Shown piece after piece: positions 58,235 to 64,000 of a stretch of 64,000 nt of DNA (position 1 is its first letter; each line of letters opens with the position of its first letter). This stretch comes from Oikopleura dioica. Lineage: Eukaryota; Animalia; Chordata. Both the position numbers and the translations under genes were made by a program. The notes below the pieces were generated by a model, which saw only the letters and a list, made by a program, of their open reading frames with translations, ran no database searches and had not been told where the DNA came from. The DNA is taken from contig OU015568.1 in NCBI GenBank assembly GCA_907165135.1, positions 7,440,001-7,504,000 of the forward strand, read 5' to 3'.

Positions 58235-60302
58235 ATGGGGCGATATTTTATTCTATGGGGCGAGAAATCTGACGCATATTTTTACGAGCTCCGTCATTTG
58301 CTGAACATAACGAATGGAGACTATACGAAAGGAAATACGTTTTTTGCATCAATGGATTACTATGCAAGGATGTTTTACCTTGTCATTCTGGGTGTACTCG
58401 GAGCGGCTATACTCCTTGCATCTGCAATTTATTTTTTTTGCAAAAAAAAGTATGTACTATTTTCGCAAAAAATAATTCATACTGTATAGATTTTCTAACA
58501 ATACCACATGGATACGCGCTCATCAAAATTTCTATATTTTGCGAATGTTTATCTTCTTGCTTTTTTACCTCGTTGATTTCGGGTAAGCCTTACTCCAGCT
58601 CACCAATACTTTCGTTTAATCTTCATTCAGGCTCGATATTTATATGGCAATACAACTGTTTAGGACAAGAAATTTCTTTTGGGGTTCATCGTCAATCATA
58701 ATTATCATCATTGCTCAATTTATTCAAAATATTGCTTCTTTTAACTCTAAAGCTCGGTTTTCAAAAGGACTCCTATTTATGATAGAGGATAATTTGAAAT
58801 CTTTTAAGATTTAACAGATGAAGAAAGAGAATCGTTTTCTGTAAAATTACTCCATTGTTTATGCATTGGACCAATATTTATATTTTATAAGCTCTTAAAA
58901 GTCCATAAGTCAGAGGTAGGCATAAAAGTTATACTTAGGCCACGCGCTTTTTAGTATACTGTACAGTCATTTCTCAAGCTCGTTAACAGGGAGAGCGCGC
59001 CGCTTGTTAAGAAACATTTTTTGATGGATTTGCCGAAAATAGATGGGCGCTCGCTAAGCCTGCCTTTCTCGGCTTGGAAAGTGGAGCTTTGCATCCCTTG
59101 TAAAGAAACTTGGGTTTTCCAAAAATAAATAGGACGCCCGGTGTAAAGAAACATGAGTGCAAATTGGTGTTGACAAACTTGAGAAATGACTGTATACGGT
59201 TTATACAGTATAACTTATACTTGAAATTGAAGTCGATGATTTACTTGGGGAATAATGCCGATTTTAGGGCACCAGCGAAAATTTACTAGAAAGAAAAAGA
59301 TCTTTAGAAATAGAATTCACTAAACTCAAAATTATAGAAGGATTGATTGAAGGAACTAGTCAGGTAAATATGGCAGAAATCGACAATTTTTGACCGACTT
59401 ATTAAATTTATGACAGGTTTTGTTGATTTATGAATTTTTTTTAGCTTTTTCTTAAATTTTATATTTACGTAAACTGCACATGGTATAAAGAATTCAGCGA
59501 CGGAGTCAGAAAAGAAGGGTTTCCACCCTATACTCGTGCTGGTAAAAATTAATTGATTCTATAAAATGTATATTTTTTTCTAGTAAATGATTATTGCGTT
59601 GCCGAACAGTCCATAAGTGTAAACCTTCGATCTTTATCCTTGTTAATGTCAGTGGCTACTTTTTTAATAACCATGAAGATGATCAAGGACGTTCAATACG
59701 ATAGTGATGGGTTGTCACTAAGTAAGCAGATATTTATTCTTTTTCAATTGGTACTGCAATTAGTTTTCCGTTCGATCATTTATATACTATTTTCATTTCA
59801 TTTCGGTGTTTCATCCACACAGTCCCCAACGAAAAATTTTCTCATCAGTTTTTTGCCCTTACTTATTCATTTTTTAATACTTATTGCTTATCAATCAATT
59901 ACAGATGGATTTTTGAAAGTTATTCGTCAAGATTGGTATTATTCAATAGGACGAGTATTTTTCTATGATCTAGGAGAGAAAAATTCAAGTATTGGCGCAT
60001 TGAATTTTTTACTAATGCATCTTGAAATTTTGATTGTTTTCATTCTGTTGATAGTAAATGGCTTAGGCGATGATTATGTATTCGGAATTTTTGGCTTAGA
60101 AATTCGATTAGAAACTGCTGCTACACTGATTAACATTTATCTATTTTTATTAATCATATTCGGCTTAAATTTGCTGTGGATATTCCGTCTTTGTCCGGCT
60201 TCATCAGTAAGACGTCAGTCTTTTGTCGAAGAAATCAAACTGATTCTCTGCCGGAATTGCCTCGTGAACACAAGCAATCAGGATGATTCTAATCAACCAT
60301 AA
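58235..60302 (+). CDS. AT-rich polytopic membrane protein, possibly XK-related; exon structure unclear
   Basis: Hydrophobic ORFs at 58235-58489 and 59640-60302 with an in-phase splice at about 59541-59584. SLSLLMSVATFL and LVFRSIIYILF loosely resemble XK-family segments. Confidence 0.35.
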
Positions 60303-60440: not shown

Positions 60441-62072
60441 TTAAATTTTTGAGTTCAATATTTTGTTGACTACAGAATTGACTTCTTCCGGATGCGTGCA
60501 TTGAAGGTGATGAGACGCGTTTTCCACTACAGTTACAGAGCATTTGAAATTAGGATCAGCAGCTTCAAGCTCTTTTATAATTTTGTAGCCGACAGAGTTT
60601 TCCACCCAGCTTTTGCCGCCATAGAGAAAATGAATGTTTTTCGGAAGGTTTTCGTGTTTTTCGAGCATTCGAGGACCCATCGGATTTTTAGCGTATCCGA
60701 AGCCAGCATTCAAGTTGCTAAACGCGATCTCTCCGCTAGCCTTTAAAAACGAGTTTGAAAAGACGTTGCTGTGTTTGAGTACTTACAGGCTTTGCAGAGT
60801 TAATTTCAAAAATGTAGTCCAAAAACTCATTGCCATAGGTCGCCGCCAAATCCTTCCTCGCTGCTTTGAGTATTTTCGGGCCGAGCGACATGGGAAGAGC
60901 TCTGAGGATGTCCATACCACCGAACTTTAACCCAAGTCCTTGGTACGATTTGAGCAAGATTTTCTGCCACCAGTTTAGGCGCTTTTCAACGCGCTCTTCA
61001 AAGGTCATTTCAGACTCTTTTATTCCCCAGGCGTCGAGGAGAATAACTCTGAACATGAATTTAACAACAAAAGCTCCCATTTTCATCTTACCCTTCGGTG
61101 GAAAAATCAGCCTCAATCGCTAGTCTCGCTGCAAGATATCCTCCGAAAGAGTGGCCGCCGATCCAGAAGGTTGTTTCTCCAGGAACTTCTACCGCAATAA
61201 CATCTTTGAGTGATTTTACCCATTCATCTTCGGGTTCTTCTGGAAACTCTGGCCTTTCTGACTGAGCAAAACCAGGCAAATCGATCATCAAAATCGCTCT
61301 AAATTAGCGTCAATCTCTTTCAAGATTGAAAATCTGAAGATGAACGTACCCTGGGCTCGGGAACCAGTGTAGAAAACCTGAGTCAGGGTATTAAATAACT
61401 GAAATGAAAAGCCGCAAAGCGGCTTTTTTAAAAAACGAAGCCGCAAAGCTGCTTCGCAAATATTATCATTTCAATCTATCAAAAATTAAGACGAAGCCGC
61501 TTCGCGGCTTCGATTTTAAAAACGCCGCTGCGCGGCTTTTCATTTCAGTTCTTTCAGACCCTGACTCAGGTTTTCTACACAGGTTGTTGAGCCCAGAACG
61601 TACCTATCCGAAGCCATATCCGCTACATTTTTATAAAAACATCCTGTTCCAGCGACCCAGCCATGTAAAAGCACTAATGGCGGTTTCTCATTTTTGAGTT
61701 CTTCTCTGACCCAGTAGCATCGCGTTCGTCCAAGGTCAGTTTTTACGTCGACGAAGCTCACCGGCGTCGGCGAGAATAGACTCTTGACTGGATCTGGCGA
61801 AGGGACGGGAGTGGAGGCGATGGCAAAAGGAAGGGATTTAAAGTTGTAAGTGCATATTTTTAACGCTCTCAATTTAAAATTTGCCATTTGAATTTTGTAT
61901 TTTTCTAGCTTTGAAGTTGCTTTTAGTTTCTTTTATTACTTTTTCTTACATAATTAAGTACATTCGAGCTTATAAATCCCTATCCATTGATCCTCTGTTC
62001 GAAGGAAAATTAATTTATTTTTTGTATTTTTTTCTGGTTATCTTACCCTAAGAGCTGTCGTAAAAAGTTCAT
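60441..62072 (-). CDS. ABHD4: Alpha/beta hydrolase, ABHD4/ABHD5 family, Ser-nucleophile type; 5' exon uncertain
   Basis: PLVLLHG, IDLPGFAQSERP, GHSFGGYLA, ILLDAWG, YAKNPM..R, IHFLYGGKSW and ASHHL. Confidence 0.8.
61351..61596. mobile_element. Family-A MITE copy with perfect 8-bp TSD overlapping an ABHD splice donor
   Basis: AACGTACC at 61343-61350 and 61597-61604. On the minus strand the TSD reads G|GTACGTT, which is the donor. Confidence 0.92.
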
Positions 62073-62381
62073 TTTGTAGTACGAAAAAGTCACGATTAAA
62101 AGGATTGTTTGTTTGATCTCGGTCTCTGACTTGCCGTTCTCGACTGTCCCATTTACGCTCCAAAACAAGAAGTTACGTAAAGACAAATAACTCTGAAGAA
62201 AAAACTGGGGTAGAATGTGTGGGATAGAAAGATTCAGATTGTCAAACAAGAATGAAACTCCTATGAACGTGAATCGATTGGATGGGCGCGCGGCCAACTC
62301 TCCGTGGGGCAAAAGCATGCTGTATTACAAAAAATAAACGCAACCTTGAAAAAGTCTCTAAAAGTAGAAAATTTTTATTTT

Positions 62382-63268
62382 TTAAAAAGGTTTGAACAGA
62401 GCAAGGTATCCCTTGCAAATTTCTTCTTTGTCTTCGAGTTTCTTGTACAAAGGGTAGTCCTTCGAATAAGCTTCGTATTTGATGTAGTTGTACTCTTTCA
62501 GCTGAATTTTTTGTTAAGAAAAGTCTAAGGGAACGGAACATACGCCAATCTTCGTAGCTAGCTTTTGGCTGGCCTTGTTTGGGGCTGTGAAGAAAAAGGC
62601 CTCTGCTCCTTCTTTCTGCGAATTGCTAATGCAAGTTGACAGGAAAGTTGAGGCAATTCCCTTCTTTCTAAGTGCGCTTTTGACGCACATAACTCGGCAC
62701 GTGACCAGCTGATAGCCCTTCATTCGACCTTAAAATTACGATCAAGACCTGGACATAATCGAGTCGTCTATGATTTCAAGACTTTTTCGCTCGTATTTTG
62801 ACCTGCTAGTAGACTGACCTTGAGACTTGCTCATCGCGCCAATTTGCATGTCTGCCATGAGCGAAAAGTAGTTCACAGCGGTCTGTCCTTGAATAGGTTG
62901 GAGCTCGTTTGGCTTCCAGATCTTCGGGAACTTTTCTTTCGTCCCTAACATCACGGCTACCAGCTCATTATCCAACAGGAGCCCGAAAGAGTGGGGTTGA
63001 ATTTCGTCTAAAACGCCGTGAACGATGCAGTTTGTGACGATGTACTCCATTGAATCCTAATTTTCGGGAAAGAGAAAATAGTTATAAGAGCCCTAGAGAA
63101 GTAGATAATCTCGTCTATCCCTCTTTCCTCAAGAACAGTCCCCTCAACCGGCTTATCCCCGTTGAAAGTCACTATAACCGGCTCTGTGAAGGCATTATTT
63201 CGTAGAAACTGATTCACTTGATCCACGTGCTCTTCACTCAACGTAATTAAATCTAATGTTCCAGACAT
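62382..63268 (-). CDS. GNAT acetyltransferase of the insect aaNAT (Dat/speck-like) type
   Basis: V..FLRNNAFTEPV (cf. FFKDEPL), SFGLLLDNELVAVMLG, FSLMADMQ, motif A VMCVKSALRKKGIASTFL, and ASQKLATKIGLKEYNYIKY (cf. SARVMEKLGF). Confidence 0.78.
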
Positions 63269-63291
63269 ATTCCTCTCTAATTTCTTTCTAC

Positions 63292-63312
63292 AATTTGACG
63301 CAGCTGAAAAGG
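63292..63312 (-). promoter_or_regulatory. Candidate trans-splice acceptor between PAH and the GNAT gene
   Basis: Minus-strand tttcccttttcag about 35 nt upstream of the GNAT ATG, within a gap of about 135 nt after the PAH stop. Confidence 0.5.
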
Positions 63313-63403
63313 GAAATTGTGGATGTACTTGACACTTAGCGGGAAATTCAAAGGCGCGAAGCTTGAAAAAGAAAGAAGAAAATATTCATTGAAATTGGAT
63401 AAT

Positions 63404-63969
63404 TTATTCGATCATGCGTTTGAGTGCAGCGGAAAGGGCTTCGACTTGATTCTTGACTCCGTCGGCGATATTCTTGCATTGCTCAATATTGTCAAGAATT
63501 TCAACGGACTCGGTGTATGCGTTGTACTGCACTTGAACCGGCTTGTTCATCGTTTTGGCGAATTCAGAAACAAGGCGTTTTGCATCTTCAAATGACTCGG
63601 TAACGAAATAGGTTGGCTGGTAGGTGGTGATTGGGTATTCTGTCACAGAAGTTACTGATGGTTGGAAGGGGAGGATCTTTGGCTCGTCAGTTCGGCAGTA
63701 CTCAAGTTCGCCGAATGAGCTCAAAATGCCAGCGCCGTATGCTTTGATTTCTCCATCTTCCCTAAATGAACGGTTCCAGCTATGATAATGTTTGTTTCTG
63801 ATTTACCGGCAAAGTCCAAATTCAATAGTAAACCAATAAATCGTCGCTAATTTCTTCACGTCCTCATCTGATGCTCCAAGCGAAGCGAGGCCAATCTCTT
63901 GACTGAAGGCAGCAAACTTCGGGTCAGCAAAAAGAGGAACATGGCCGATCAGCTCGTGGCAAACATCTC
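63404..63969 (-). CDS. PAH: Biopterin-dependent aromatic amino-acid hydroxylase, phenylalanine hydroxylase-like; 3' exons only
   Basis: [50 protein letters not shown] and a C-terminal tetramerisation helix. YWFT/KAYG argue against TPH, and PITTYQ lacks the TH-type Asp. Confidence 0.88.
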
Positions 63970-64000
63970 TGGAAATAAAAACGTTTTTAGCGTTGTTGGA

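Follow-up and report, generated by a model that had tools for sequence, protein, structure and literature searches.

Does the tight tandem arrangement of an aromatic amino acid hydroxylase gene and an acetyltransferase gene in the chordate Oikopleura dioica mark an operon devoted to one biochemical pathway, or are these two genes with separate promoters that lie side by side in a compact genome? The pair is located close to the end of a stretch of 64,000 nucleotides (contig OU015568.1 of assembly GCA_907165135.1, positions 7,440,001 to 7,504,000; this whole stretch is hereafter the window, and its coordinates are used throughout), where a gene of the GNAT family (63268-62382) lies downstream of a phenylalanine hydroxylase (PAH)-type gene (64000-63404), both on the minus strand. 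An earlier interpretation of the same DNA, made without database searches (hereafter the sequence-only reading), proposed a spliced-leader (SL) trans-spliced operon in which the GNAT is an insect-type arylalkylamine N-acetyltransferase (aaNAT) that is co-transcribed with PAH to make N-acetylated aromatic amines. The explanation that we prefer as a whole, to which we assign a probability of about 0.5, is that of a linked tandem pair in which the GNAT is under constraint and would be transcribed from an E2F-type promoter of its own, the adjacency being that of a compact genome.

The gene pair is retained in three lineages

The same arrangement is found on two marine metagenomic contigs, L001 (Tara Oceans) and L005 (JGI), each of which carries the 3′ exons of the hydroxylase, a spacer and the GNAT gene, all on the same strand. 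At the DNA level, identity amounts to 72-75% between these contigs and the window and to 88% between the two contigs. RNA reads labelled as the same species as the window match the 3′ end of the first L005 intron without exception (30/30 bases), and lineages of the L001 and L005 type are therefore assigned to the O. dioica complex. Thus, the adjacency of PAH and GNAT, noted in a single genome by the sequence-only reading, is kept across three O. dioica-type lineages. Near the distant GNAT homologues L007-L010, which may not be orthologues, no PAH was detected over 2 kb of upstream and 7 kb of downstream sequence, an absence that carries little weight.

The hydroxylase gene runs beyond the end of the window. 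Its penultimate exon in the window (63807-64000, minus strand) matches Biopterin_H with 102 bits over profile positions 164-216 and is followed by a GT donor after 63807; its last exon (63404-63761, minus strand) matches the same domain with 132 bits and ends with the stop codon at 63406-63404. When the last exon was compared with solved structures, PAH (119 bits) outscored TH (96 bits) and TPH (94 bits); hence, in agreement with the identity proposed earlier, a PAH-type aromatic amino acid hydroxylase is the best reading of the gene as judged from its 183 C-terminal residues. The Biopterin_H catalytic domain and the C-terminal helix are common to this gene and animal PAH (PDB 5DEN and 2PAH), although the window gene is represented by these last 183 residues only. 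An AATAAA poly(A) signal (63403-63408, minus strand) overlaps the stop codon and is kept in L001 and L005, both of which have a second AATAAA 18 nt further on. The last exon is also covered, between 63453 and 63706 and at 96% identity, by an environmental metatranscriptome contig of 254 nt (run X1).

The acetyltransferase gene evolves under purifying selection

The GNAT model comprises four exons separated by introns of 56 nt, 90 nt and 42 nt and encodes a protein of about 232 aa. Exon 1 (63113-63268; 52 aa) includes strand β1, helix α1 and the Glu29-Pro30 pair; L001 and L005 share its ATG (63268-63266) and reading frame, and its ratio of nonsynonymous to synonymous substitution rates (dN/dS) is 0.09. 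Intron 1 (63057-63112) is modelled as a GA-AG intron; its donor at 63112 reads GA in the window and in L001, and L005 has a canonical GT in that position. Alternatively, exon 1 might end at 63092 and be followed by a GC-AG intron of 35 nt, which would add seven residues to the protein. Exon 2 (62819-63056; 79 aa) encodes strands β2-β3 and most of a long insert, and its identity is 84-87% in L001 and L005 and 38-42% in more distant marine relatives. Exon 3 (62544-62728) contains motif A, that is, the acetyl-CoA site, and the start of motif B. Exon 4 (62382-62501; 39 aa, stop codon at 62384-62382) is 85% identical in L005 and is followed by an AATAAA at 62379-62374; the C-terminal KGYL.LFKP is retained in distant relatives. 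All four exons lie on the minus strand. The splice model is supported by the GT donor at the same site in L005 and by L002, a distant relative that has no intron at the junction of exons 2 and 3.

Comparison of the GNAT with its L005 counterpart over all four exons yielded a dN/dS of 0.07 at a dS of 1.6, i.e. with saturated synonymous sites, and values of 0.05-0.09 for each single exon. Such a low ratio indicates that the GNAT is a real, functional gene under strong purifying selection. When a library of all available proteins was queried with exon 2, three matches were obtained, each of them a short open frame of marine metagenomic origin, and none to a full-length protein; given that the search returned only fragments, the gene seems to be unannotated as a whole protein in that library. 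The same exon gave no match in the ESM Atlas. More distant GNAT homologues (L002-L004 and L006-L011) show 30-42% identity.

The positions of introns differ among the homologues. In L002, intron 2 of O. dioica is missing and another intron lies 14 codons earlier, L008 has two additional introns in the N-terminal part, and the last intron is placed earlier in both L006 and L008, in agreement with the high intron turnover known in appendicularians. The first GNAT intron of L005 (L005:3250-3517) is longer than that of the window (268 nt vs. 56 nt) because it holds a palindromic miniature inverted-repeat transposable element (MITE); L005 carries a similar copy within an intron of PAH, at about 1440-1640. 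An open frame upstream of the L006 exon that by eye resembled GNAT exon 1 was discarded when a word search identified it as part of a repeat (L006:26-127; proteins P0007-P0013) that contains a long open frame and is dispersed over many unrelated marine contigs. This false lead calls for caution with regard to by-eye alignments.

The spacer contains a conserved, promoter-like block

Exactly 135 nt (63269-63403, minus strand) separate the stop codon of the hydroxylase from the ATG of the GNAT, as the sequence-only reading had estimated, and the homologous spacer is 132 nt long in L001 and 150 nt in L005. A non-coding block of 45 nt within it (63324-63368, minus strand) is the same in the window, L001 and L005 but for a single base and a deletion of 6 nt in L001, although synonymous sites are saturated (dS 1.6). 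Elsewhere, identity between the lineages is approximately 55% in the spacer and 21-46% in introns. The block contains TTCGCGCC at 63360-63353 and TTTCCCGC at 63346-63339, which together form tandem E2F-like sites, followed by GTCAAGTACA. This double site occurs once in the 64-kb window and in 0/100 shuffles, and a pyrimidine-rich CAG follows the block at a distance of 8-20 nt in all three lineages. In O. dioica, 27.7% of well-supported ovary promoters have E2F1 at their start sites, and annotated operons contain 693 internal promoters (PMC6389100).

The gap that follows, which separates the GNAT from an alpha/beta-hydrolase gene (Pfam Abhydrolase_1), contains a second conserved non-coding block, with a CCAAT box (about 62215-62312), which is kept in L005 despite indels of 1, 3 and 8 nt. 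In view of this second block, conserved promoter-like blocks directly after the preceding gene may be a local rule. A 91-aa open frame that overlaps this block was rejected as probably non-coding in view of 1-nt and 8-nt indels and the lack of a Pfam match, and one RNA read maps beyond the CCAAT-box block, at about 62055-62115.

The 45-nt block is a candidate promoter of the GNAT, from which transcription of that gene would start within the spacer. The message may still receive a spliced leader: a pyrimidine tract followed by AG (63304-63316, minus strand) lies 36 nt before the ATG, is followed by an A-rich leader and is a candidate SL acceptor. The only upstream GT dinucleotides of the spacer are less than 35 nt away from it, so that there is no plausible donor for a cis-spliced intron, and the unpaired polypyrimidine-AG acceptor described in the sequence-only reading is indeed present. 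Two further AG-A sites in the spacer end at 63288 and 63277. Alternatively, the two genes might form a hybrid operon that has an internal promoter. Their adjacency is best understood as linkage in a compact genome rather than as a metabolic unit.

Several observations weigh against a separate GNAT promoter in the spacer. Single E2F-like octamers occur in the window at chance frequency (13 found vs. 12.9 expected), and hence it is conservation that has to carry the case for promoter function. No E2F-like site was found upstream of a relative that is unlinked to PAH. If transcription began within the block or immediately past it, the outron ahead of the acceptor would be short, at only about 10-25 nt. 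The block might, instead of a promoter, be an element for intercistronic processing in a true polycistron. Finally, the RNA reads (runs X5, X6, X2 and X1) are few and come from a lineage that is less than 95% identical to the window: each bulk run contributed 6-7 reads and X2 contributed none. Among the 6-7 divergent reads per run, neither spliced joints, nor leader sequence, nor a bridging transcript was seen.

Operon or separate transcription units

Whether the pair qualifies as an operon depends on the rule that is applied. In the O. dioica reference set, intercistronic distances do not exceed 60 bp (median 31-33 bp), and a cut-off of 413 bp was inferred from spliced-leader data (PMC7986045); in the annotation of the Okinawa lineage, co-oriented genes no more than 500 bp apart are joined into operons (PMC11067885). 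The 135-nt gap between PAH and GNAT is within the 500-bp rule and exceeds the 60-bp rule; even when measured between the likely cleavage site and the acceptor, the distance is about 80 nt. The pair is an operon by proximity only. Like the SL-resolved operons of O. dioica, some of which have internal promoters (PMC6389100, PMC7986045, PMC11067885), the pair is co-oriented and closely spaced, its first gene ends in a poly(A) signal and its second is preceded by an unpaired AG; it differs from them in its gap of more than 60 bp and in the promoter-like block inside that gap. Thus, of the SL-operon proposal, the pairing, the acceptor and the proximity within 500 bp hold, whereas agreement with the 60-bp rule does not, and the block in the gap speaks against it.

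The main rival is a true dicistronic operon with one promoter upstream of the hydroxylase, from which a precursor would be cleaved after the AATAAA and trans-spliced at 63304; the GNAT would then depend on the hydroxylase promoter, and the block would be an intercistronic processing or regulatory element. This arrangement is consistent with the shared strand, the 135-nt gap, the poly(A) signal at the stop codon and the unpaired acceptor, all kept in three lineages, and with a gap below both the 500-bp rule (PMC11067885) and the 413-bp cut-off (PMC7986045). However, the approximately 80 nt between the cleavage site and the acceptor exceed the 60-bp limit and the 31-33 bp median of the reference set, and the block is GC-rich and E2F-like, hence promoter-like. 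Nor does the acceptor discriminate between one transcription unit and two, given that 39% of O. dioica genes, single genes included, are trans-spliced at an unpaired AG that is usually followed by A (PMC6389100).

Persistence of the adjacency can be read in both directions. The pair has outlasted the heavy genome scrambling between these lineages, which favours a dicistronic unit; on the other hand, operons of O. dioica are rarely conserved between lineages (PMC11067885), and a gap of 135 nt is a very small target for rearrangement breakpoints. The RNA reads are similarly equivocal. Both PAH and GNAT are expressed at a low level in the divergent RNA lineage, and one read piece covers exactly the conserved block (63325-63368), past the likely poly(A) site, an observation in favour of the dicistronic operon. 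Yet the libraries contain unspliced molecules, three reads of the L005-type lineage retaining GNAT intron 1, and the piece may derive from precursor RNA or from DNA; hence this single read proves nothing with regard to co-transcription. We consider the dicistronic operon rather unlikely; on balance, a compact genome in which each gene has its own promoter is more probable than an operon that serves a pathway.

What kind of acetyltransferase?

The GNAT identity of the downstream gene and its motif A, both proposed in the sequence-only reading, are borne out by exon 3, the only exon that reaches Pfam Acetyltransf_1 (20.9 bits vs. a cut-off of 20.7). Its segment RKKGIA at residues 152-157 fits the motif A pattern R/Q-x-x-G-x-G/A after strand β4, and its profile matches solved GNATs with E values of 8e-4 to 1e-2. 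These solved structures are generic GNATs that match over motif A, namely archaeal and eukaryotic N-terminal acetyltransferases, NATA1-like enzymes and diamine acetyltransferases. The queries consisted of sequences or profiles of exons 1, 2, 3 and 4 and of an exon 2/3 bridge, which changed nothing. None of the insect aaNAT structures (Dat 3TE4, AgmNAT 5K9N, mosquito 4FD4-7) was recovered at E values up to 10 with these exon-sized, low-sensitivity queries, and sheep serotonin N-acetyltransferase, the vertebrate AANAT, was not among the matches of the GNAT exon profiles either. Language-model look-alikes of exon 3 fall into eukaryotic GNAT clusters, most commonly from nematodes and arthropods, and are taken as a lead only.

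The gene had been thought to align along its length with Drosophila Dat. This alignment was not reproduced, Dat being absent from the solved-structure matches of every exon. Likeness to Dat was also assessed residue by residue, with the named residues and motif limits taken from published work (PMC3429931, PMC6070697). At an ungapped offset of −1, 8/22 named residues of Dat motifs A and B are identical in the GNAT (Val148, Arg153, Gly156, Ile157, Ala158, Gly173, Ser186 and Lys192), a level reached by 5/2000 shuffles. Among these, GNAT Arg152, Ser185 and Lys191 are the counterparts of Dat Arg153, Ser186 (the general acid) and Lys192; the Arg and Gly/Ala contacts of the mapping are common to many GNATs. 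Thus, with respect to the distal catalytic serine, a counterpart of Ser186 is present but, at the same offset, catalytic Ser182 of Dat maps to Pro181; His220 is replaced, by eye, with Cys.

The N-terminal part is less similar. The DEPLN motif, which holds the catalytic glutamate (Glu47 in Dat; PMC6070697), corresponds to TEPVI at GNAT residues 28-32, with 2/5 residues (Glu and Pro) kept, and the mapping of this part is no better than chance (reached by 806/2000 shuffles). Glu29-Pro30, after helix 1, is a candidate counterpart of the Glu-Pro motif with its catalytic Glu; in the distant relative L008, this position is occupied by Asp-Pro. Dat motif D ends at Asn90 and motif A starts at Leu139 (PMC3429931, PMC6070697), an insert of 48 residues, compared with approximately 47 (residues 91-137, between the presumed strands β3 and β4) in the GNAT, where motif D was placed by eye. 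With this by-eye placement, insert length appears to be the most family-like feature of the GNAT.

Set against Dat and other insect-type aaNATs (3TE4, 5K9N and 4FD6), the GNAT is alike in a GNAT core with motif A, in an acidic residue and Pro after helix 1, in overall length, in the counterparts of Arg153, Ser186 and Lys192 and, with motif D as placed by eye, in an insert of 47-48 residues between motifs D and A. It is unlike them in the profile searches of solved structures, which detected no similarity, in TEPVI for DEPLN, in the replacement of Ser182 with Pro and of His220 with Cys, and in the stretch from the Glu-Pro motif to motif D, which is longer by 18 residues. On these sequence features, membership of the insect aaNAT family is plausible, at slightly short of even odds. 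The Oikopleura gene would then be a further deuterostome member and not the first, since insect-type aaNATs were previously retrieved as two genes in Ciona intestinalis and four in Saccoglossus (Hiragaki et al. 2015, PMC4394704), for which the available part of that paper reports no PAH linkage.

Alternatively, the gene might encode a GNAT of another subfamily, for instance one that acetylates proteins, polyamines or small molecules in cycling or endocycling cells; the likeness to Dat would then reflect no more than the common GNAT core. The best motif A profile matches, to archaeal and eukaryotic protein N-acetyltransferases and to diamine acetyltransferases, favour such an assignment, most of the 8/22 identities with Dat are acetyl-CoA contacts common across GNATs, and E2F-type control would fit a housekeeping role linked to proliferation or endocycling. 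The profile matches, however, span only 25-38 residues of motif A, with E values from about 1e-3 upward. Furthermore, to our knowledge, a long β3-β4 insert and the Glu-Pro pair are untypical of the protein and diamine acetyltransferase families, which counts against this assignment. We regard it as possible, though less likely than not.

A proposed aromatic-amine pathway

The proposal that the pair forms an insect-type aaNAT and PAH unit for the production of N-acetylated aromatic amines can draw on Glu29-Pro30 after helix 1, on the insert of 47 vs. 48 residues together with the counterparts of Arg153, Ser186 and Lys192 at one offset, and on the nematode and arthropod look-alikes of exon 3. 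Parts of the literature lend it precedent: such aaNATs exist in Ciona (PMC4394704), and Caenorhabditis elegans PAH can feed serotonin synthesis (PMC9898190). Against this, the profile searches recovered no insect aaNAT structure; Ser182 and His220 are replaced with Pro and Cys, only 2/5 DEPLN residues are kept and the N-terminal mapping is at chance level; at least one decarboxylase step would intervene between PAH and an aaNAT; and around a more distant homologue, which may not be an orthologue, PAH is absent over 2 kb of upstream and 7 kb of downstream sequence. In addition, genes within O. dioica operons show only a loose functional relation and poorly correlated expression (PMC11067885).

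A shared aromatic-amine pathway finds no basis in the data, and the reading as a whole, with aromatic amines as presumed substrates, appears decidedly improbable. A literature search for papers that link Oikopleura, PAH and N-acetyltransferase retrieved none. The boldest form of the idea, namely that a chordate PAH and an insect-type aaNAT form one SL-resolved unit in which hydroxylation (of Phe or Trp) and final N-acetylation are co-expressed, for example in the house-secreting epithelium, and that selection has held the two genes together across cryptic species with scrambled genomes, carries a very low probability in our assessment.

Neighbouring features

Two further features were observed downstream of the pair. 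A palindromic MITE of 246 nt (61351-61596) lies in an intron of the minus-strand alpha/beta-hydrolase gene, right after the splice donor; its arms of 83 nt are 88% complementary, and its 8-bp flanking duplication, AACGTACC, repeats the donor sequence. Because AACGTACC copies the donor, two GTACGT donors flank the element. A duplication of 8 bp is consistent with a hAT-like MITE. Just past the hydrolase gene, on the opposite strand, there is a hydrophobic open frame of 220 aa (59640-60302, plus strand) with no Pfam match.

Implications

Closely spaced genes, SL acceptors and internal promoters have all been described before in O. dioica, and the arrangement described here would not surprise a specialist. 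Likewise, a tunicate gene of the insect aaNAT type would be nothing new, two having been reported in Ciona (PMC4394704). The annotation of the GNAT could be improved, its full-length protein seemingly being missing from public sets. If the gene is a homologue of the insect-type aaNATs, that family extends to appendicularians, and Oikopleura gains a candidate enzyme for the inactivation or modification of amines. The E2F-like block, for its part, is a compact and testable promoter-like element inside a pair that proximity rules call an operon and, as such, bears on the share of annotated Oikopleura operons that are truly polycistronic.

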